Positions 313-61,870 of a DNA stretch of 64,000 bases are shown piece by piece. Below the pieces are notes generated by a model. It searched no databases and was not told where the DNA came from. It was given only the letters and a program-made list of their open reading frames with translations. The DNA is from Heterodontus francisci (Eukaryota): assembly GCF_036365525.1 (NCBI RefSeq), contig NC_090374.1, positions 15,107,168 through 15,171,167 on the forward strand, in the 5' to 3' direction. The position numbers and the translations under genes were made by a program. The first letter of the stretch is position 1. The number at the start of each line of letters is the position of its first letter.

Positions 313-692
313 GGGGGAACGGTAGCATAGTGGTTATGTTACTGGCCTAGTACTCCAGAGGCCTGGACTAATACTCCGGAGACATGAGTTTAAATCCCAC
401 CACAGCATCTGGTGGAATTTAAAATTCAATTAATAAATCTGGAATAAAATGCTAGTCTCAGTAATAATGATCATGAAATTAGTGGATTGTTGTAAAAGCC
501 CATCCTGTTCACTGATGCATTTCAGAGGAGGAAATCTGCCATCCTTACCTGGTCTGGCCTACATGTGATCCATAGCAATATGGTTGACTCTTAACTGCCT
601 TCTGAAATGGCTTAGCAAGCCATACCGTTGTCAGTGTCAATAAAGGCTGGCTTTGCCAGTGATGCTCACATCCCAAGAACAAATACAAAAAG
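313..692 (+). mobile_element. tRNA-headed SINE (family X; head/body and tail shared with LINE X at 38520-42150)
   Basis: A-box-like TAGCATAGTGG and B-box-like GAGTTTAAATCC; body GAGGAAATCTGCCATCCTTACCTGGTCTGGCCTACATGTGA; tail CAATAAAGGCTGGCTTTGCCAGTGATGCTCACATCCC plus A-rich end. Confidence 0.8.
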
Positions 693-739
693 GCACTAAA
701 TAGCTTGACACAAGAGTGATGACAAGGACGGTTAAGGGT

Positions 740-1070
740 TTACTATTGACAGGCTCAATGGAAGTAAAGAATTTGTTTCCTGTCATTGAGGTATCCAGAC
801 CAAGAGGTTGTAAATGTAAAAAGTCACGAATAGGAAATTTGGGAGAAACCTCTTGACCCAGAGAGTGTTTAGAGTGTGGAACTTGCTAAAACAAGTAGAT
901 GTTGAGGTGAATAGCAGAGTTGCTAAGGGGAAGCTAGATAATCACATGAGAAAGAAGGAATAGAAGGATATGTTAGTAGGGTGAGATGCAGTATGGTGGG
1001 AGGAGGCTCATGTGGAGCATTAACACCCCAGCATGGACCAGTTGGGCCGAATGGCCTGGCTCTGTGCCGC
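740..1070 (+). mobile_element. degraded CR1 LINE 3' fragment
   Basis: ACCCAGAGAGTG..GTGTGGAAC and GGGCCGAATGGCCTG motifs match the 3' ends of the CR1 copies elsewhere in the window. Confidence 0.55.
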
Positions 1071-1369
1071 AGACTCTGCCTCGCATCACAGAGCCAAACT
1101 TGTGTTCATTCAAGAAAAGGAGATAAAAGGGGCACCTGGGCTCTAGAATGCTGCATAAACGCTCCCCTGTGCTGCCTCAAAACTGTAGCTGAGGTTGAGT
1201 TGGCAGCAACTGAACTACATGCAGTCTGCTACTGCCAGGTCCAGTTTGTGCTGGGGGATTGGGACTGGTGCAGGAGAGACAGTGTGAGGTGAGGATTTAG
1301 TTGTCAGCATTGTTGTTGTACGGAACTGCCAATAGTTTCAAACTATTTACACTTTGTCACTTAAATTTA

Positions 1370-1680
1370 GGGCAGCGCAGTGGTTAGCACCGCAGCCTCA
1401 CAGCTCCAGGGACCCGGGTTCAATTCTGGGTACTTACTGTGCGGAGTTTGCAAATTCTCCCGGTGACCGTGTGGGTTTTCGCCGGGTGCTCCGGTTTCCT
1501 CCCACAGCCAAAGACTTGCAGGTGATAGGTAAATTGGCCGTTGTAAATTGCCCCTAGTGTAGGGAGGTGGTAGGGAATTATGGGATTACTGTAGGATTAG
1601 TATAAATGGGTGGTTGTTGGTTGGCATAGACTTGGTGGGCCGAAGGGCCTGTTTCAGTGCTGTATCTCTAAATAAATAAA
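1370..1680 (+). mobile_element. V-SINE (HE1-like), tRNA-derived
   Basis: tRNA-like head (CAGTGGTTAGCAC...GGTTCAATTC); V-domain GGAGTTTGCA...GGGTGCTCCGGTTTCCTCCCACA; CR1-like tail GGGCCGAAGGGCCTGTTTCAGTGCTG plus (TAAA)n; siblings at 23722 and 39863. Confidence 0.85.
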
Positions 1681-1786
1681 TTGATTCACCTACAAATTAA
1701 TAAAAGATATTTTAGAATTCTCGTGTGTGGTTTCTTGTGGCTTGTTTCAGCCTTGGCATCTTTTTCTGGAGATCTTAAAGAAGGAA

Positions 1787-1975
1787 TAAACTTGCATTTC
1801 TATAGCACCTTTCACGACGTCAGGATGTCTCAAAGCACTTTACAGCCAATGAAGTAGTTTTGATGTGTCGCCAGTGCTGTAAAGTCGGAAGCGCATCAGT
1901 CAATTTGTGCACAGCAAGCTCCCACAAACTGCAGTGATCATAACGAGATAATCTGTGTTTTTTTTTCATGATGGT
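1787..1975 (-). mobile_element. Deu-domain SINE (SacSINE1-like) 3' fragment
   Basis: Matches the 3' half of the 30170-30515 copy; L2-type tail GAAAGGTGCTATAGAAATGCAAG on the - strand. Confidence 0.6.
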
Positions 1976-1989
1976 GGTGAAAAGTCAGA

Positions 1990-3300
1990 GATTCATGGCA
2001 CAGAAGGAGGCCATTTGGCCCACTGAGTTCACGCCGGCTCTCTGTCCAACTATCCAGCCAGTCCCATTCCCATAACCCCGTAACCCTGCACGTTTATTTC
2101 CCTCAAGTGCTCATCCAATTTCCTTTTGGAAGCATTCATTGTCTCCGCTTCCGCATCTTCGTAGGCAGTGAGTTCGAGGTCATTTCCACTCGCTGAGTTA
2201 AGAAAGCTCTTCCTCACATCCCCTCGGCATCTCTATCCCAAAAACCTAAATCTGTGTCCCCCTAGTCCTTGTACCATCAGCTAATGAGAAGAACATTTCT
2301 TTGTCAACCTTCTCTAAACCTGCCATAATCTGGTACACCTCTATCAAATCTTCCTGCAATCTCCTTTGCTCCAAGGAGAACAACCCCAGCTTCTCCAACA
2401 TCTGGTCTCGATCTCTCAGTGCCTCACCGAGTGGTGTATTTAACACCGCCCCACATTGAGGGAACTAACTTTTCCTGCTCTCCAAGATTTGAACACTCCG
2501 CCCCCATCCTACCTGCAACATCCCACTGCCCCAGCATACTCTCACTATTAAATGATACCCATTGGTTAACTGCATTCCCCAATACCAGTGCTACATCTAA
2601 AATTTAACTAGCCTCCTTTAAATGTCACAAAACAAAGTCCCAGGAACTTGACATGTGAAATGAACAAGAGGAGGGGACAGAGGGTTTTGGAGGTGGAGGG
2701 GGGGGGGGGGTGGGTGCAATTCCAGAGAGTCTATCAGTGGAGGATGTGCTATTAATAGTAGGGTGAAGGGAGGTTGGGGGGGAAATTCACAAAAGGACGG
2801 AGTCAGAGATGGAGCATAGGAAGAGGAGGAGGCCATTCAGCCCCTCAAGACTGTTCCGCCATTCAATGAGATCATGGCTGATCTTTCTCCAAACCCCAAC
2901 AACCCACCTTGGCTCCGTATTCTTTCATACTGTTGTCTAGCAAAAAATTCATCGATCTCCGATTTGAAATTGTTAGTTGAGCTAACATCTACGGTATCAT
3001 TCTGGGAGAGAGTTCCACACGTCTGCCACCCTTTATGTGAAGAAGTGTTTCCTAACTTCTCTCCTGAATGACCTGGCTCTGATTGCTTGCCCCAGACTCC
3101 CGCACCAGTGGAAAATGTTTCTCTCTCTCTATCCTATCAATTCCTTTCAAAATCCTTCCATCAAATCAACCCTTAACCTTCTACATTCCAGTGAATGCAG
3201 CCTAGTTTATATAATCGCTCTCATAATCTAACCTTAGAGACCTGGTAACATTCTGCTGAAAATCAGCTGGACTCCTTCCAAAGCCAAATATCCTCTCAAA
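1990..3300 (-). mobile_element. two degraded CR1 3' fragments (1990-2400 and 2815-3300)
   Basis: ORF 2246-2446 LGLFSLEQRRLQEDLIEVYQIM...TRTRG is the CR1 ORF2 C-terminal motif. Confidence 0.7.
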
Positions 3301-3739
3301 GATGCGTTGCTATGGGTGAGACAACAAGACTACAGGGGGATTTGAAGATGGAAAGGGATAATCTTTTTTAGGTCTAACCTTGGTGGGGATGAACCCGGAT
3401 CCAGTCTTAGGTCAGTGAGGGCAGGGGGAAGGGGAAAGTGGGACTTAGTGCGGGACATGGAGAGGCTCTGACGGTCTTGCATGAATTAGAGACTGTAGAG
3501 GGTGGAGGGAGCAAGGGGTGATGCTGGAGAAATCAGGACGCGAGGCGACACAATGGTGGCTCAGGGTTTCAGCAGCTGAGAGCGGGACAGAGAGAAGGGG
3601 GTTGGGGGGGGGGTGCGGGGGTTCGATCTCATGGAGATGGAAAAGGAGGTGTTGGTGTTGGAAAGGATGTGTGGTTTGAACCTGAGCGGTTTACTTAGTT
3701 ACCAGTGTAACATTGACACATTGTGTCGGTTGTAAATCT

Positions 3740-7544: not shown

Positions 7545-8324
7545 CTCCCTCCCCACTTCAAAAAACAACTGATACATTAAAATGTAAAATGGTACATGTA
7601 CATTGTTCGGGATAGAAATGCATTACTGTACTAATGTGCCTCCTGGCTTGCCATTGTCATGTGAGCTGTGCCATGAGGCACTCACTGCAGGCAACCATAA
7701 CAAGTTCAATTCAGTAAAGACACAGTACAAGCAAGACTGTGAGTTTGTAACATGGTGTCAGAGTGGAGCTGAGATTGAGTGTTGAAGAGTTGTATAGAAG
7801 CACAGCTACTAAAACAGGAACACAGGAATGTTCAGAGCTGCTGAAAGCTGCTAAAAGCCATGGGAAGCCACAAAAAGAAGCATTAAAAGCACTGGGTAAG
7901 ACACAATGGCTGCAAATCTTCCTCTCACGCCGCCAGTCGAAATGAAAGGTGATATGAAGCAGAACTGGCAGTTTTTCCAATCACAATGGCAAAATTATGA
8001 AATTGCAATGGATATAATTTGAAAACCAGAGCAGCTACGAGTAGCTACACTTTTATCACTGTTGGGGAGAGACTGTAAATAAATGTATTCTAACGTAAAT
8101 CTCTCCAAAGAACAAACAAAACAGACAGCAGAAATTTTGAAAGACTTGAAGGCCAGCTTTGAACCCCAAGTGAATGTAACTTATGAACAGTTTGATATTA
8201 GGGCCCAAGGTGAAAAACAGTCCATTGATCAATATGTGACTGCATTAACACAGCTCGCAGACTCCTGTGAATTTGCGCAACTAAAAGATGATCTAATTAG
8301 GGGTTATATTAGGCATAAGACCGA

Positions 8325-9195
8325 GCATTTGACCGAGTATGGCATCAAGGAGCCCTAGCAAAACTGGAGTCAATGGGAATCAGAGGGAAAACTCTGCTCT
8401 AATATAATAAAAGCAAAATACTGCGGATGCTGGAAATCTGAAACAAAAACAAGAAATGCTAGAATCACTCAGCAGGTCTGGCAGCATCTGTGGAAAGAGA
8501 AGCAGAGTTAACGTTTCGGGTCAGTGACCCTTCTTCGGAAAACTCTGTTCGTTGGAGTCATACCTGGCACAAAGGAAGATGGCTGTGGTTATTGGAGGTC
8601 AACCATCTGAGCTCCAGGACATCACTGCAGGAGTTCCTCAGGGTAGTGTCCTAGGCCCAACCATCTTCAGCTACTTCATCAATGACCTTCCTTCAATCAT
8701 AAGGTCAGAAGTGCACATTGTTCAGGACCATTTGCGACTCCTCAGATACTGAAGCAATCCTTTTCGAAATGCAGCAAGACCTGGACAATATCTGGGCTTG
8801 GGCTGATAAGTGGCAAGTAACATTTATGCCACACAAGTGCCAGGCAATGACCATCTCCAACAAGAGAGAATCTAACCATCTCCTTTGACATTCAGTGGCA
8901 TTACCCATCGCTGAATCCCCAACTATCAACATCCTAGGGGCTACCATTGAGCAGAAACTGAACTGGAGTAGCCATATAAATACTGTAGCTACAACAGCAG
9001 GTCAGAGGCTAGAAATCCTGAGGCGAGTAACTCACCTCCTGACTCCCCAAAGCCTCTCCACCATCTACAAGGCACAAGTCAGGAGTGTGATGGAATACTC
9101 TCCACTTGCCTGGATGGGTGCAGCTCCAACAACACTCAAGAAGCTTGACACCATGCAGGACAAAGCAGCCCGCTCGATTGGCACCCCATCCACAC
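8325..9195 (+). mobile_element. RT fragment of LINE family X
   Basis: GVPQGSVLGPTIFS; QKLNWSSHINTVA..LSTIYKAQVRSVMEYSP, closely similar to 38520-42150. Confidence 0.85.
8400..8536 (-). mobile_element. Penelope-like pseudo-LTR fragment with 14-bp TSD
   Basis: Reverse complement of the 9870-9962 segment; flanked by GGAAAACTCTG(C/T)TC at 8386-8399 and 8537-8550. Confidence 0.75.
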
Positions 9196-9415
9196 TGCAA
9201 GAAGCTGAATCTAGCCAAACACTTGTGTGCAAAATGAAGGAAGCACAACAAGCAGGTACAGATGGCCACTGGAGCGATGTCAGTCAAAGATTCTGACAAA
9301 TCATGATACACCATATAACAAATTGGGTCAGTCAGGTCGATAGGTAATAAATGGTTTGTGACTGTTGGAATGATGACTGCAGAAGGAGAATATCAAGTCA
9401 TGCAACATCATGACT

Positions 9416-23410: not shown

Positions 23411-23809
23411 CTGTACTAATGTGCTTCCTGGCTTGCCGTAGTCATGTGACCTCTACCATGAGGCACTCACTGCAGGCAGCCATCGCAAGTTCAGTTCAAT
23501 AAAGACACAGTACAAGCAAGACTGTTCTCCTGTGAGCTTGGAACATACATAATTTCCCAGAATACAATAACAGTTCCTGAAATCTAACAGTTTGGTTTGC
23601 ATGCTTGTTGTTACTGTAATCACAACTAACACATATGTAACCAATATTTCCAAAGTAATTTACATGTTAAAAAGATTCCTTTTCCTTTACACAAGTATAT
23701 CTTCAACAAAAATATCATCATTGGGCAGCACAGTGGCGCAGTGGCTAGCATCACAGCTCCAGCAACCCAGGTTCAATTCTGGGTACTGCTTGTGTGGAGT
23801 TTGCAAGTT

Positions 23810-27560: not shown

Positions 27561-27819
27561 AGTTCTCTCTGTGACCGTGTGGGTTTCTGCCAGGTGCTCC
27601 GGTTTCCTCCCACAGCCAAAGACTTGGAGGTGATAGGTAAATTGGCCATTGTAAATTGCCCCTCGTGTAGTTAGGTGGTAGGGAATATGGGATTAATGTA
27701 GGATTAGTATAAATGGGTGGTTGATGGTCAGCACAGACTTGGTGGGCCGAAGGGCCTGTTTCAGTGCTGTGTCTCTAAGTAAGAAATAATGAAAAGAACA
27801 ACTTATTTCTTTTCCTGTC

Positions 27820-35788: not shown

Positions 35789-35872
35789 TTGGGCCTAGTT
35801 GGCCAATTAGGAGGAACGGTGGGCCTGGGGCGGCCAATTAGGAGGAACAGTGGGCCTGGGGCGGCCAACAAG

Positions 35873-36152
35873 CAGGACAAGGGCAGCAAATGCATGGGAA
35901 CACCACCACCTGCAAGTTCCCCTCCATGTCACACACCATCCTGACTTGGAACTATATCGCTGTTCCTTCACTGTCGCTGGGTCAAAATCCTGGAACTCCC
36001 TTCCTAACAGCACTGTGGGTGTACCTACCCCACATGGACTGCAGCGGTTCAAGAAGACAGCTCACCACCACCTTCTCAAGGGCAATTAGGAGTGAGCCAT
36101 AAATACTGGCCTGGCCAGCGACGCCCACATCCCATGAATGAATTAAAACAAA
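35873..36152 (+). mobile_element. 3' tail fragment of LINE family X
   Basis: FTVAGSKSWNSLP..HHHLLKGN* followed by GCCAGCGACGCCCACATCCCATGAATGAA. Confidence 0.85.
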
Positions 36153-37234: not shown

Positions 37235-38519
37235 GTATGTATTTGTGACTGGGTCTCTGGAATTAACCGACCACTCATACAGCCTCGGAGACGGGCAGAG
37301 TAAACAAGGTATAGGGAGGGGATGTTCTGTTAGATTAGCTCAGTGACGCGCGTTTCGATCAAGAAAAAAAATTGAGTGTAGAAAGTTGGGAACATTCCCC
37401 TCTTTTCCCTTTTCTCTAATTCTGTTTGCTGTTCCTCTGTGATATCTTTCAGTTCTCAGGACTTTTTAAAGGGTGAAATTGTGAAGACGGGTTTCATAAA
37501 CTTGGCTTGTGTTCCCTCCAGTTTAAGGGTTGATTGAGGTTTTTGAATTGTTAAACGGGGGGGGGGGGGGGGGGGGGGTTTCTATGGGGGTGGATACCCA
37601 TCTGGTAGATCTTGGTGTCATATATGACCCCGAGATGAGTTTCCAAACACATTTTAGCCCCATCACTAAGACCACACATTTCCAGCTCTGTAACATCGCC
37701 GGACTTTGCCCCATCTCAGCACATCTCCTGCTGAACTCCTCATTCATGTCTTTGTTACCTCTAGACTTGTCTATTCCTGGCTGGTCTCCCACATTCTACC
37801 CCCTGTTGTCTGTGTCTTATCGCAGCAAGTCCCTTTCCCCTATCACCCCTGTGCTCGCTGACCTACACTGGGTCCCGTTCAAGCAGCGCCTTGATTTTTA
37901 CATTCTCAACCTTGTTTTCAAATCCCTCATGACCTCGCCCCTCCCATATCTCTGTCATCGCCTCCAGCCCCAAAACCCTCCCAGATATCTGTGCTAAAAT
38001 TAGAGGTAGGTCAGGCAGGAGTGAAATCAGGAAGCACTTTTTATACAAGAGGTCGTGGAAATCTGGAACTTACTCCTTCAAAAGGCTGAATGTTGGGGGA
38101 GGGGGGTGTCAATTGAAGCCTGCAAGACTGAGATTGATAGGTTCTGTTCAGGTAAGGTTATCGACGAATAATGTAGTCTCACTTGTATTATCTGCATAGG
38201 CAGTGTCTAACCTGCTGAGCGTTTGCTGTTTTTGTGTGAGATTGTGGAGAATTGGGGATTTTGGGTTAAAACTAACTATTTAATAAGGAAAAAGGCAGAG
38301 GAATCATTTCTGAGGAGCTAAGAGGTGGAGAGGCGTATAAAGAAATAGGAGCGAGAATAGGCCATGTGGCTCCTCTAGCTTGCTCCACCATTCAGTATTG
38401 ACCTGTACATGAGCTCCAGTTTCCCATCCTGTCCCCATATTCTCTTAGAGTCCAAAAATTTATCGATCTCAGCTTTGAATATACTCAATGACCAAGCATT
38501 CACAGGATTCCAAAGATTC

Positions 38520-41500
38520 TTTTTTTAAATTCATTCATGGGATGTAGGTGTCGCTGGCTAGGCCAGCATTTATTGCCCATCCCTAATTGCCCTTGAGAAG
38601 GTGGTGGTGAGCTGCCTTCTTGAACCGCTGAAGTCCATGTGGGGTAGGTACACCCACAGTGCTGTTAGGAAGGGAGTTCCAGCATTTTGACCCAGCGACA
38701 GTGAAGCAACGGCCGATATAGTTCCAAGTCAGGATGGTGTGTGACTTGGAGGGGAACTTGCAGGTGGTGGTATTCCCATGTATTTGTTGCCCTTGTCCTT
38801 CTAGTTGGTAGAGGTCGCAGGTTTGGAAGGTGCTGTCTAAGGAGCCTTGGTGCATTGCTGCAGTGCATCTTGTAGATGGTACACACTGCTGCCACTGTGC
38901 GTCAGTGGTGGAGGGAGTGAATGTTTGTAGATGGGGTGCCAATCAAGCGGGCTGCTTTCTCCTGGATGGTGTCGAGCTTCTTGAATGTTGTCGGAGCTGC
39001 ACCCATCCAGGTAATTGGAGAGTATTCCATCACACTCCTGACTTGTGCCTTCTAGATGGTGGACAGGCTTTGGGGAGTCAGGAGGTGAGTTACTCGTCTC
39101 AGGACGTCTAGCCTCTGACCTGCTCTTGTAGCCACGGTATTTATATGGCTACTCCAATTCAGTTTCTGGTCAATGGTAGCCCCGAGGATGTTGATAGTGG
39201 GGGATTCAGTAATGGTAATGCCGTTGAATGTCAAGGGGAGATGGTTAGATTCTCTCTTGTTGGAGATGGTCATTACCTGGCACTTGTGTGGCGTGAATGT
39301 TACTTGCCACTTATCAGCCCAAGCCTGGATATTGTCCAGGTCTTGCTGCATTTCTACATGGACTGCTTCAGTATCTGAGGAGTCAGGAATGGTGTTGAAC
39401 ATTGTGCAATCATCAGCGAACATCCCATTTCTGACCTCATGATTGAAGGAAGGTCATTGATGAAGCAGCTGAAGATGGTTGGGCCGAGGACACTACCCTG
39501 AGGAACTCCTGCAGTGATGTCCTGGATCTCAGATGATTGACCTCCAACAACTACAACCATCTTCCTTTGCGATAGGTATGACTCCAGCCAGCGGAGGGTT
39601 TTCCTCTGATTCCCATTGACCTCAGTTTTACTAGGGCTCCTTGATGCCATACTCGGTCAAATGCTGTCTTGATGTCAAGGGCAGTCACTCTCACCTCACC
39701 TCTTGAGTTCAGCTCTTTTGTCCATGTTCGAACCAAGGCTGTAATGAGGTCAGGAGCTGAGTGGCCCTGGCGGAACCCAAACTGAGTGTCACTGAGCAGG
39801 TTATTGCGAAGTAAGTGCCGCTTGATGGCACTGTTGATGACACCTTCCATCACTTTACTGATGGGCAGCACAGTGGCGCAGTGGTTAGCACTGCAGCCTC
39901 ACAGCTCCAGCAACCCGGGTTCAATTCTGGGTACTGCCTGTGTGGAGTTTGCAAGTTCTCCCTGTGTTTGCGTGGGTTTCCTTCGGGTGCTCCGGTTTCC
40001 TCCCACATGCCAAAGACTTGCAGGTTGATAGGTAAATTGGCCATTATAAATTGCCCCTAGTATAGGTAGGTGATAGGGAAATATAGGGACAGGTGGGGAT
40101 GTGGTAGGAATATGGAATTAGTGTAGGATTAGTATAAATGGGTGGTTGATGGTCGGCGCAGACTCAGTGGGCCGAAGGGCCTGTTTCAGTGCTGTATCTC
40201 TAAATAAATAAAAAAAAAATAAGTTGGCTGATGGGGCAGTAATTGGCCGGGTTGGACTTGTCCTGCTTTTTGTGCACAGGACCTACCTGGGCAATTTTCC
40301 ACATTGCAGGGTAGATGCCAGTGTTGTAGCTGTACTGGAACAGCTTGGCTAGGGGCGCGGCAAGTTCTGGAGCACAGGTCTTCAGTACAATTGTCACGGC
40401 CCATAGCCTTTGCAGTGTCCAGTTACTTCAGTTGTTTCTTGATATCACGCAGAGTGAATCGAATTGGCTGAAGTCTGGCATCTGTGATACTGGGGACTTC
40501 AGGAGGAGGCCAAGATAGATCATCAATTCGGCACTTCTGGCTGAAGATTGTTGCAAATGCTTCAGACTTATCTTTCGCACTGATGTGCTGGGCTCCCCCA
40601 TCATTTGAGGATGGGAATATTTGTGGAGCCACCTCCTCCAGTTAGTTGTTTAATTGTCCACCACCATTCACGGCTGGATGTGGCAGGACTGCAGAGCTTA
40701 GATCTGATCCGTTGGTTATGGGATTGCTTAGCTCTGTCTATCGCATGCTGCTTACGCAGTTTGGCACGCAGATAGTCCTGTGTTGTAGCTTCACCAGGTT
40801 GACACCTCATTTTGAGGTATGCCTGGTGCTCCTGGCATGCCCTCCTGCACTCTTCATTAAACCAAGGTTGGTCTCCTGGCTTGATGGTAATGGTAGAGAG
40901 GGGGATATGTCGGGCCATGAGGTTACAGATTGTGGATGAGTACAATTCTGCTGCTGCTGATGGCCCACAGCGCCTCATGGATGCCCAGTTTTCCATTGCT
41001 AGATCTGTTCGAAATCTATCCCATTTAGCACGGTGATAGTGCCACACAACACGATGGAGGGTATCCTCAATGTGAAGGCGGGACTTCGTCTCCACAAGGA
41101 CTGTGCGGTGGTCACTCCTACCAATACTGTCATGGACAGTTGCATCTGCAGCAGGCAGATTGGTGAGGACGAGGTCAAGTATGTTTTCCCCTCTTGTTGG
41201 TTCCCCCACCACCTGCTGCAGACCCAGTCTAGCAGATATGTCCTTTAGGACTCGGCCAGCTCAGTCAGTAGTAGTGCTACCGAGCCACTCTTGGTGATGG
41301 ACATTGAAGTCCCCCACCCAGCGTACATTTTGTGCCCTTGCCACCCTCAGTGCTTCCTCCAAGTGCTGTTCAACATGGAGAAGTACTGACTGATCAGCTG
41401 AGGGAGGTAGGTGGTAATCAGCAGGAGGTTTCCTTGTCCATGTTTGACCTGATGCCATGAGACTTCATGGGGTCCAGAGTCGATGTTGAGGACACCCAGG

Positions 41501-42150
41501 GCAACTCCCTCCTTACTGTATACCACTGTGCCACCACCTCTGGTGGGTCTATCCTGCTGGTGGGACAGGACATACCCGGGGGTGGTGATGGCAGTGTCTG
41601 AGACATTGTCTGTAAGGTATGATTCCGTGAGTATGACTATGTCAGGCTGTTGCTTGACTAGTCTGTGTCACAGCTCTCCCAACTTTGGCACAAGCCCCCA
41701 GATGTTAGTCAGGAGGACTTTGCAGGGTCGACATGGCTGGGTTTGCCGTTGTTGTTTCCGGTGCCTAGGTCGATGCCGGGTGTCCGTCCGGTTTCATTCC
41801 TTTTTATTGACTTGGTAGCAGTTAGATACAACTGAGTGGCTTGCTAGGCCATTTTAGAGGACATGTAAGAGTCAACCACATTGCTGTGGGTCTGGAGTCA
41901 CATGTAGGCCAGACCAGGTAAGGACAGCAGATTTCCTTCCCTAAAGGACATTAGTGAACCAGATGGGTTTTTACAACAATCGACAATGGTTTCATGGCCA
42001 TCATTAGACTAGCTTTTTAATTCCAGATTTATTAATTGAATTCAAATTCCACCTTCTGCTGTGGTGGGATTTGAACCCATGTTCCCAGGGCAATACCTTG
42101 GTTCTCTGGGTTACTAGTCCAGTGACAATACCACTGCGCCATTGCCTCCT
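38520..42150 (-). mobile_element. LINE X: tRNA-headed, single-ORF (APE+RT) CR1-group LINE, full length but frameshifted
   Basis: A box TGGCGCAGTGG (42141-42131); B box GGTTCAAATCC (42077-42067); APE KVLLTNIWGL..PDIVILTES..GDFN..ILDLVLT..SDH; RT ALDIKTAFD, GVPQGSVLGP, FADD; tail (ATGA)n plus A-run; host CR1 fragment continues on both sides. Confidence 0.85.
39863..40219 (+). mobile_element. full-length V-SINE (HE1-like) inserted in LINE X
   Basis: GGGCAGCACAGTGGCGCAGTGG head, V-domain, CR1-like tail, TAAA/A end. Confidence 0.9.
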
Positions 42151-53327: not shown

Positions 53328-53674
53328 TAGGCTAATGCTCTGGGGACGTGGGTTCGAATCCCACTATGGCAATTGGTGAAATTTGAATTCAATTAATGAA
53401 TCTGGAATTAAACACTAGTCTAATGATGAGCATGAAACTATTGTCGATTGTTGTAAAAACCCATCTGGTTCACTAATGTCCTTTAGGGAAGGAAATCTGC
53501 CGTTCTTACCTGGTCTGGTCTACATGTGACTCCAGACCCACAGCAATGTGGTTGACTCTTAAATGCCCTCTGAAATGGTCTAGCAAGCCACTCAGTTCAA
53601 GGGAAATTCGGGATGGGCAATAAATACTGTCCTAGCCAGTGACCCCCACATCCCACTAAACAAATAAAACAAAA
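53328..53674 (+). mobile_element. family X SINE, 5'-truncated (B box, body, LINE X tail)
   Basis: GGTTCGAATCC; body collinear with 42100-41830; at 53597/53598 it jumps to CAAGGGAAATTCGGGATGGGCAATAAA, the LINE X 3' end. Confidence 0.88.
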
Positions 53675-54726: not shown

Positions 54727-55128
54727 GAAGTGATAGAGTGTCAGTGTCTGTGGAAGTACCAAGGAGAGTGGATGGTAGTGCTGGGAACTCTGTCGTTCTC
54801 CCCTGCAAGTTCAGGTCTTCCTATGCGGATTACACTACCTTTGATATTACTGTCATCTGGAAGATGAAGGTGTTTTATACAGGACCAGTTCTCTTCAACT
54901 CGACTAACAGACTAAAGACCAGTAAAATATTTGAAAATGTAGTTCACACTAACATTAATGGCCGATACAGACTGGCTGGGGACCCCAGAAAGAAGGATGC
55001 TTCATTAGAGCTGAAGAATGCCATGTTAGATGACAACAGTGAGTATTTCTGTCGTGTGGAAGTGAAACGTCAGGGATTACCTCCTTACATGGATGAAACC
55101 AATCCTGGAACCATCCTGAAAATAACAG
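54727..55128 (+). CDS. SIGLEC15: Siglec-15-like receptor, V-set Ig exon
   Basis: Acceptor TTCCTGCAG|GA and donor CAG|GTAAAT, phase 1-1; VEVPRRVDGSAGNSVVLPCKF..VIW..YTGPVLF..GRYRLAGDPRKKDASL..DDNSEYFCRVE..GTILKIT resembles recalled Siglec-15 (VLPCTF, YAGPQVF, GRFRLLGNPRRNDLSL, YFCRVE). Confidence 0.88.
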
Positions 55129-55204
55129 GTAAATTCAACATGAATTTAAATTGCTGGTGGATACTGAATAGAATTAGACCTGCCCTGAGTCTGATAGACA
55201 GGTG

Positions 55205-55235
<31 letters not shown>

Positions 55236-55763
55236 AGAGTCATTGTCTTTGGCTACCAACATTACCCCCATACCTTTTACTAGTGACTCCACACCTCCCT
55301 GGACACTATCTCAAGCTGAACCACGTCTGTTCAATCCCAAGCTGGGCTTCTAACCCCATATTCTCGATCACAAAGACCATCTAATTCCACCTCCATCCCC
55401 TCCCTCAGCCCATCAGCTGCTGAAACTGCCACCTGTGCCTTTCTCACCCCCAGACCCGATGGTTCTAGTGCTCCCCTGACCGACTGACTGACCTCCCATC
55501 CTCCTGGCCAGGTGGCTGCCTTGCTGGCCTCACGTTTTCAGCCGGAGGTCTTGGGGTCAAGGAGCCTGTGCCAGGTCACTGACTTCTTCTCACCTCTGGC
55601 TTGTGCATGTGCTGTTCCACCGAGTGAATATGTCCACTCCCCAGGCAGACGTGCAGCAAACGTACTTGTTTGAAGAAGTGTCCGCTCATCTTGACTCCAA
55701 TGACGCCAGCAAATGTATCATCCTTGGTGGAGGGGAGAAATTTCAACAGTACTCTTGACTTGA

Positions 55764-56115
55764 GGGACTGCTCCGGCATCCCGCATAGCCGGGTGGCAAT
55801 AGAGAGGGCAAGGGACTGCTCCGGTACCCCGTGCAGCCGGGTGGCAATAGAGAGGGCAAGGGACTGCTCCGGTATCCCGCATAGCCGGCTGACAATGGAG
55901 AGGGCAAGGGACTGCTCTGGTACCCCCCGCAGCTGACTGGCAATGGAGAGGGCAAGGGACTGCTCTGGTACCCCCCGCAGCTGACTGGCAATGGAGAGGG
56001 CAAGGGACTGCTCCGGTATCCCGCATAGCCGGCTGACAATGGAGAGGGCAAGGGACTGCTCTGGTACCCCCCGCAGCTGACTGGCAATGGAGAGGGCAAG
56101 GGACTGCTCCGGTAC
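55764..56115. repeat. 48-bp minisatellite, about 7.3 copies
   Basis: GGGACTGCTC(C/T)GGTA..GCAATGGAGAGGGCAA units starting at ~55764, 55812, 55860 ... 56100. Confidence 0.95.
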
Positions 56116-56329
56116 CACGCGTGGCTGCAGGGTCAAGGGGGATGGAGGGGAGTGATGGAGAGAGTGAGGGATTGCTCTGGTACCCCACCAGATTGTTGGG
56201 GGGAGGGGTGGTTGGAGTGATGAAGAGAGTGAACAGTACTCCACATGGATAGGGGTGGGTGGGGGGTTGATGGAGAGAGTGAGGGGCCACTCTGAGATCG
56301 GCCGGCTGACAATGGGGAAGTTGAGGAAA

Positions 56330-61472: not shown

Positions 61473-61870
61473 CCAAGTCAGGATAGTGTGTGACTTGGAG
61501 GGGAACTTTCAGGTGGTCATAATCTCAGCTGCCCTTCGCAGGTTTGGAAGGTGCTGTCGAAGGAGCCTTGGTGCGTTGCTGCAGTGTATCTTGTAGATGG
61601 TACACGCTGCTGCTGTGCGGCGGTGGTGGAGGGAGTGAATGGTGTGACAATCAAGCGGGCTGCTTTGTCCTGGATGGTGTCGAGCTTCTTGAGTGTTGTT
61701 GGAGCTGCACCCATCCAGGCAAGTGGAGAGTGTTCCATCACACTCCTGACTTGTGCCTTGTAGATGATGGATAGGCTTTGGGGAGTCAGGAGGTGAGTTA
61801 CTCGCTGCAGAATTCCCAGTTACAGATCTGCTCTTGTAGCCACAGTATTTATATGGCTGGTCCAGTTAGA
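61473..61870 (-). mobile_element. LINE X RT fragment
   Basis: MEHSPLAWMGAAPTTLKKLDTIQDKAARLI. Confidence 0.8.

Follow-up and report, generated by a model that had tools for sequence, protein, structure and literature searches.

A LINE from a shark genome that begins with the front end of a SINE and is depleted of T runs on its coding strand: a candidate for transcription by RNA polymerase III

Long interspersed elements (LINEs) are textbook RNA polymerase II (Pol II) elements and short interspersed elements (SINEs) textbook RNA polymerase III (Pol III) elements, and a 3' tail is thought to be the only link between them. Here we describe an element that joins the two at the other end. It lies on the minus strand of a 64,000-nucleotide (nt) stretch of the genome of the shark Heterodontus francisci (NCBI RefSeq assembly GCF_036365525.1, contig NC_090374.1, positions 15,107,168 to 15,171,167 of the forward strand), which we refer to as the window. 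At its 5' terminus the element has the entire front end of a tRNA-derived SINE, its A and B boxes intact, plus the SINE body; behind it follows the open reading frame (ORF) of a LINE, encoding an APE endonuclease and a reverse transcriptase (RT), from which T runs have been purged on the sense strand.

Among described elements, Zenon-type LINEs of the CR1 group come close. A 2026 survey of that group (PMC13343379) reports ORF1-less, poly-A-tailed Zenon elements in elasmobranchs, and these share with the present element a single APE+RT ORF, the absence of ORF1, an A-rich or poly-A 3' end and very high abundance in sharks and rays; the survey, however, describes no 5' tRNA or SINE module, reports no T-run purge and uses the word tRNA 0 times. 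SacSINE1 and the DeuSINEs (table in PMC3747384; PMC2746220), which consist of a tRNA head, a Deu-domain and a CR1-4_DR-like tail, resemble the element in head, body and LINE-derived tail, and two stand-alone copies in the window (53333-53673 and 329-700) fit this kind, but in the present element head and body precede a 2.9-kb APE-RT coding region. In Bov-A/Bov-tA, in the RTE- and Vingi-derived SINEs and in RIME/ingi (PMC5786205) the short element is likewise made of the 5' and 3' parts of a long element by internal deletion; there the small-RNA head is found on the SINE only, whereas here it stands on the long element, and in the CR1 group. Kojima 2018 (PMC5786205) reported RTE and Vingi as the only LINEs whose 5' parts were found in SINE bodies, treated the long elements as Pol II units and listed the origin of the Deu-domain as unknown. 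U6-L1 and other template-switch 5' chimeras, as they appear where PMC4824008 cites Buzdin 2003, also have a Pol III-type RNA fused 5' of a LINE, but in that account they are one-off products, dead on arrival and with variable junctions, in contrast to the fixed junction, many copies and purged ORF considered here. In the literature that we searched we found no description of a tRNA-headed LINE, and a literature search with the SINE body sequence found nothing.

The coordinates of the element and its parts are collected in Table 1. Positions within the element (el) follow its sense strand, so that el i is window position 42151-i (el 1 = 42150, el 3631 = 38520), and "core" denotes the element minus a nested SINE (el 1924-2285). 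A reading made from the sequence alone, before this analysis, had proposed a tRNA-like head with A box, stem-loop and B box at the minus-strand start, a body of ~230 nt, a further ~110 nt to the APE, the RT and an (ATGA)n/A tail; the boxes and the stem-loop are found where it placed them, and the order as a whole is borne out by the sequence, by tblastn and by Pfam. The A box (TGGCGCAGTGG, el 10-20, window 42141-42131) fits the consensus TRGCNNAGTGG at 11 of 11 positions, and after a gap of 53 nt the B box (GGTTCAAATCC, el 74-84, window 42077-42067) agrees with its consensus, GGTTCGANNCC, at 10 of 11. The anticodon-like arm, CTGGA/CTAGTAA/CCCAG at 42122-42106, carries AGT (Thr) in the anticodon position. 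Across the window ARAGORN reports zero tRNA genes and Rfam nothing at its gathering threshold; in a permissive Rfam search the tRNA model falls at 42057-42137 on the minus strand with 18.9 bits (E 0.32) against a gathering score of 29, the kind of sub-threshold match that a degenerate SINE head would give. Judged by these features, the head is a degenerate SINE-type head rather than a tRNA gene. In type-2 Pol III units the A and B boxes lie inside the unit, close to its 5' end, and the unit begins ~8-10 nt before the A box; here the A box begins at el 10, and the insertion boundary lies at most ~2 nt from tRNA position +1. The predicted RNA fold from head to leader is suggestive (z = -2.56). 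The body that follows is possibly Deu-domain-like. With its A and B boxes the head is that of a tRNA-derived SINE (SINE2) or DeuSINE, but the 3,269-nt unit, bearing APE and RT, is neither short nor non-coding, and in the window the name SINE fits, in that sense, just the stand-alone copies (53333-53673 and 329-700).

The remainder of the element has an N-terminal APE and an RT downstream of it, as a LINE should. The APE motif KVLLTNIWGL begins at el 430, and in tblastn the core aligns in order to residues 8-977 of P0003. This relative, a 983-amino-acid (aa) APE+RVT_1 protein, passes the thresholds for Exo_endo_phos, Exo_endo_phos_2 and RVT_1. Pfam RVT_1 also matches two RT pieces of the present copy (E 1.9e-11, window 39551-39871, and E 1.7e-05), while its APE pieces give matches to Exo_endo_phos and Exo_endo_phos_2 that are in the correct order and sub-threshold because the copy is fragmented. 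The alignment to P0003 is split over six or more frame pieces and shows a minimum of five in-frame stops and five frameshifts; this copy is therefore dead and does not hold the intact ORF that autonomy requires. Since the leader between body and APE is only 107 nt long, there is no room for an ORF1, in agreement with the sequence-only reading, which had claimed that none was present. The lack of ORF1 and a poly-A tail, here A7 after (ATGA)2, are both listed features of CR1-Zenon. We take the element to be a decayed, full-length member of a CR1-group LINE family of sharks that is very abundant, has no ORF1 and ends in an A-tail; the family is possibly of Zenon type.

Head and LINE share a single insertion site. 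When the two flanks are joined in silico they match, across the join, four uninterrupted homologues of an old CR1 within the window, so the flanks were once contiguous within the 3' region of one old CR1; the earlier claim that the unit interrupts one old CR1 fragment holds. The boundary itself may be read in three ways, with AGGAGG belonging to the old CR1 and a 3-nt target-site duplication (TSD) AAT, with an AAAG TSD, or with a target deletion of ~7 nt. Neither a SINE tail nor an A run is present between body and leader, and when the leader was considered as an old SINE tail, as expected of a complete SINE followed by a LINE, its local alignment to the tail did not surpass that of shuffled sequences (P 0.66) and the idea was rejected. 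Taken together, these two results exclude separate insertions of a SINE and then a LINE. The nested SINE is flanked by an 8-nt TSD, CCCATCAG on the minus strand, at 40235-40228 and 39865-39858, and family contigs without it show joints 39863->40222/40228. Further copies of the nested SINE's own family lie at 1375-1680, 27561-27782 and 23722-23809. In the contigs of run X8 (organism D) the nested SINE is nearly missing, and its family may therefore be lineage-restricted.

The junction of SINE body, leader and APE recurs in independent copies. A protein search with the N-terminal piece of the APE led to short gene models, which an exact look-up placed in the EukProt proteome of the whale shark, Rhincodon typus. 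The start of P0158, MAQQATQLY, matches the translation of el 299-325, that is, the last 25 nt of the body and the junction, at 8 of 9 positions, and the model runs on through the leader into the APE, to el 627. P0152 shares the starting ATG and is colinear from el 299 to el 750, its body-side match being weak (4 of the first 9 residues), and P0154 begins within the body at el 197-238 (E 8e-4), then resumes in the leader at el 395 and extends into the APE. Because the three models differ in sequence they represent three independent loci; the fragments show 75-82% protein identity. Elsewhere the searches were negative: a 44-aa junction-bridging peptide gave no candidates, residues 1-45 of P0158 returned only P0158 itself, metagenome scans (with a protein query and with a 20-mer) and a viral-contig scan gave no match. 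Among the 32 contig pieces listed, none spans 41828, which speaks neither for nor against the junction.

The stand-alone SINE is equivalent to the element minus el 324-3554, i.e. minus leader and ORF. Its joints, 38595-38597 -> 41828-41832, are present in all four contig runs, which represent three organisms, and the body-leader junction of the LINE coincides with the SINE's own body/tail breakpoint. All sequence runs were compared as contigs, which cannot show RNA 5' ends or strand. Runs from at least five organisms contain 46-77% of the sampled 31-mers of the element, and between 40,000 and 800,000 contigs per run map to it, with a depth gradient from 3' to 5', so that the family is very abundant and common to several species. 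It is very probable that the headed architecture, a SINE front end on a LINE, is family-wide. The window also holds three 5'-truncated fragments of this LINE family, 81-92% identical to the copy described here, at 8317-9194 (plus strand), 61473-61867 (minus strand) and 35865-36152 (plus strand).

These observations bear on the possibility that the element is a one-off 5' chimera of this locus, produced by two adjacent insertions or by an RT that switched from LINE RNA to SINE RNA as in U6-L1. A head-APE junction unique to the locus would have spoken for it, and template switching onto Pol III RNAs is given as established for L1 where PMC4824008 cites Buzdin 2003. Three independent R. typus gene models, however, bridge the same body-leader-APE arrangement, the junction falls at the SINE's own breakpoint, no SINE tail or A run intervenes, the leader is unrelated to the tail, and the ORF-wide T purge described below needs long-term selection; we regard this explanation as extremely improbable and close to refuted. 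As the origin of the first headed copy, by analogy with the L1 chimeras, a template-switch event is plausible. Two routes would fit the relationship between LINE and SINE: in one, LINE cDNA was extended by template switching onto SINE RNA, the headed LINE spread, and a SINE subfamily arose from it by internal deletion; in the other, the body has always been LINE 5' sequence.

Within 38520..42150 the only sense run of four or more T is a T10, which is the A-tail of the nested SINE as it appears on the LINE sense strand. With that SINE excluded, no run of T4 or longer occurs before the 3' end, as expected of a Pol III unit: the 3,269-nt core holds 0 TTTT and 8 TTT, matching the count of the sequence-only reading (no sense TTTT outside the nested SINE, about eight TTT). 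In the LINE part (2,946 nt, 20.5% T) we observed 86 TT, 6 TTT and 0 TTTT, against 124, 25 and 5.2 expected from composition, and runs of A, C and G are close to their composition expectation. Dinucleotide shuffles give an expectation of 12.2 TTT (P 0.02) and 1.5 T4 runs (P of zero = 0.20). In synonymous shuffles, with protein sequence and codon usage fixed, the 5 TTT observed compare with 16.9-17.1 expected (P<0.001) and the 0 TTTT with 2.5-2.7 (P 0.05-0.06). All five TTT in the ORF are in-frame Phe codons, none lies across a codon boundary, and TTC is preferred over TTT as Phe codon by 13-14 to 5; the purge therefore happened under coding selection on the reading frame.

The same depletion is missing from other LINEs. 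Four control LINE fragments in the window, put through the identical test, are at their own expectation (P 0.28-0.75) and favour TTT. The observation of the sequence-only reading that neighbouring LINE fragments carry sense T4 runs was correct, and one TTTT is found in an older fragment of the same family (8322-9227); the truncated fragments of the family are partly depleted of T runs, as expected after decay. In sliding windows of 3,269 nt on both strands the median number of T>=4 runs is 15 and the minimum is 1, reached only over this element. At the 38 listed positions where the majority letter of the contigs differs from this copy, no change would produce a sense TTTT, and one replaces a TTT by TTC. 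Pyrimidine tracts of at least 8 nt are not depleted (8 observed, 4.5 expected) and A runs only mildly so, and the signal is thus specific to one base and one strand. We conclude that the T-run purge is real, goes beyond base composition and codon usage, and is specific to this LINE family. Two other causes were considered and rejected: avoidance of splice-site pyrimidine tracts, on the tract counts just given, and avoidance of the element's own endonuclease target sites, since A runs are not purged to match. Separately, a GC-rich, T-poor tandem repeat at ~55720-56250, with repetitive minus-strand ORFs, explains the third-longest T4-free stretch of that strand (56839->55209).

Pol III terminates at runs of T4 or longer and, as Orioli et al. 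reportedly found in 2011, it also stops, with lower efficiency, at T stretches that are shorter or interrupted; this would account for selection against TTT across 3 kb. A head flush with the 5' end, a sense strand purged while coding and a T5 located 62 nt past the A-tail would fit a type-2 Pol III unit with a coding region inside it. We therefore hypothesize, giving this an evens chance, that the full-length RNA of the headed LINE is transcribed by Pol III. The A and B boxes of the head would serve as the assembly site of TFIIIC and TFIIIB, and Pol III would initiate at the first bases of the head and read through ~3.2 kb, which in our proposal it could do because the sense strand has been selected to be free of T runs. 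Termination would occur in flanking DNA, in this copy at the downstream T5; the RNA would be translated without a cap, and the APE-RT would copy it back by way of the 3' tail that it has in common with the SINE. Of the earlier suggestion that the family took up a Pol III promoter and purged its terminators, the purge stands, by synonymous shuffles and four controls, as does the unity of head and LINE at this locus; use of the promoter stays at the even chance just stated. Precedents of a kind are said to exist: Kurose et al. reportedly claimed in 1995 that the human L1 promoter depends on Pol III, and Gunnery and Mathews are said to have shown in the same year that Pol III transcripts can be translated. 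The fuller picture, an autonomous shark LINE lineage that is wholly Pol III-transcribed, with an uncapped RNA, a non-canonical start and a partner DeuSINE formed by internal deletion, we advance tentatively, at slightly less than an even chance.

Several points weigh against a Pol III transcript. Natural Pol III transcripts are usually a few hundred nt long, uncapped and poorly translated. With codon usage fixed, the absence of TTTT alone reaches only P ~0.05, and the strong signal lies in TTT, which is not a canonical terminator. No in-frame AUG precedes the APE in this copy: the APE frame opens at 41793, immediately behind a TGA of the same frame, and this TGA overlaps an ATG in another frame (an AATGA stop/start overlap). 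The ATG at 41734 is private to the present copy, most contigs reading C at that position. The R. typus models place the SINE body upstream of the ORF, and none of them reaches the tRNA head. Finally, two features would fit Pol II, a leader that is CpG-rich like a Pol II internal promoter (observed/expected CpG 0.94 at el 324-440, 0.29 in the ORF and 0.12 in head and body) and an AATAAA in the tail, 42 nt upstream of the A run. The latter has a parallel in T+ SINEs such as B2, whose Pol III transcripts, as Borodulina and Kramerov reportedly showed in 2008, are polyadenylated through AAUAAA. Those SINEs likewise combine a Pol III promoter unit with AATAAA before the A run, but the present tail has TTT only and no T4+ terminator, and it belongs to a coding unit ten times as long.

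An alternative that draws on the CpG-rich leader and the AATAAA keeps the architecture as family-wide but has Pol II make the productive mRNA, either from an internal promoter formed by leader and SINE body or by read-through from outside. The head would then be a passenger, a boundary element or a protector of the 5' end, and the loss of T runs would serve another purpose at the RNA level, e.g. avoiding U-rich destabilising or cleavage-stimulating elements. The contrast in CpG between leader and ORF and the AATAAA followed by an A-tail speak for this alternative, a capped mRNA would remove the translation problem, and the survey of the CR1 group (PMC13343379) describes Zenon-type elements that lack ORF1 and end in poly-A tails. 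It does not account for a purge specific to T runs of the sense strand that is missing from the four other LINE families in the window, nor for an element that starts within ~2 nt of tRNA +1, where a type-2 Pol III start is expected. We know of no Pol II constraint that predicts such a purge. On balance we consider the Pol II alternative unlikely, though better placed than the two other alternatives to Pol III transcription of an autonomous element.

It is also conceivable that the headed 3.3-kb elements are non-autonomous passengers, transcribed by Pol III but with a defunct ORF, and mobilised through the common tail by an autonomous LINE that has no head. The present copy, dead, without an in-frame AUG and with a private ATG at 41734, is what such a passenger would look like, and no intact ORF of the LINE family was recovered. 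A defunct ORF is hard to reconcile, however, with TTT confined to in-frame Phe codons and with the preference for TTC, which place the purge under coding selection, or with the protein identity that the R. typus fragments retain; moreover, no second, head-less 5' end was seen among the contig joints listed. We consider this improbable, and more so than transcription by Pol II.

Table 1. Coordinates of the element, its parts and related features in the window
Feature	Position	Strand	Remarks
Complete insertion, from tRNA-like head through SINE body, leader and APE-RT ORF to tail	38520..42150	-	3,631 nt; 3,269 nt without the nested SINE
tRNA-derived head	42061..42150	-	A box, anticodon-like arm, B box
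SINE body, ~235 nt, ends at el 323	41828..42060	-	Common to stand-alone SINEs 53333-53597 and 329-631; SINE-form joints end at 41828-41832
LINE-specific leader, 107 nt, CpG-rich, el 324-429	41722..41827	-	
APE endonuclease domain, degenerate, with frameshifts and stops	41101..41721	-	tblastn against P0003; sub-threshold Pfam matches
Reverse transcriptase domain, split by nested SINE	39243..40263	-	Pfam RVT_1, tblastn
Nested SINE of a different family (V-SINE of the sequence-only reading), later arrival	39866..40227	+	8-nt TSD
3' tail, 77 nt, common to the SINE: AATAAA, (ATGA)2, TTT, A7	38520..38596	-	Contig joints 38595-38597 -> 41828-41832
First sense T>=4 beyond the element: T5 in flanking old CR1, 62 nt past the A-tail	38454..38458	-	
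Stand-alone SINE, el 56-321 joined directly to el 3555-3631	53333..53673	+	Self-comparison, alignment
Older stand-alone SINE, same head and body, 77% identical	329..700	+	Self-comparison, alignment

Away from the element, a 155-aa ORF at 54738-55205 on the plus strand shows Ig V-set-like hallmarks (..VVLPCKF.. / ..YFCRVEV..) and is probably an exon of a host immunoglobulin-superfamily gene.

If the Pol III reading is true, a LINE with the promoter head and body of a SINE and an ORF purged of terminators would blur the division of LINEs and SINEs by polymerase, and would be a rare natural case of an mRNA made by Pol III. It would offer a route for the birth of SINEs and for the exchange of tails, in which a headed LINE becomes a SINE by internal deletion, and with it an origin for a SINE body whose source is listed as unknown (PMC5786205). 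The conserved head and body of the SINE would then be part of an autonomous element and not the add-on of a parasite, and it would become clear how a LINE comes to have a fully portable promoter.

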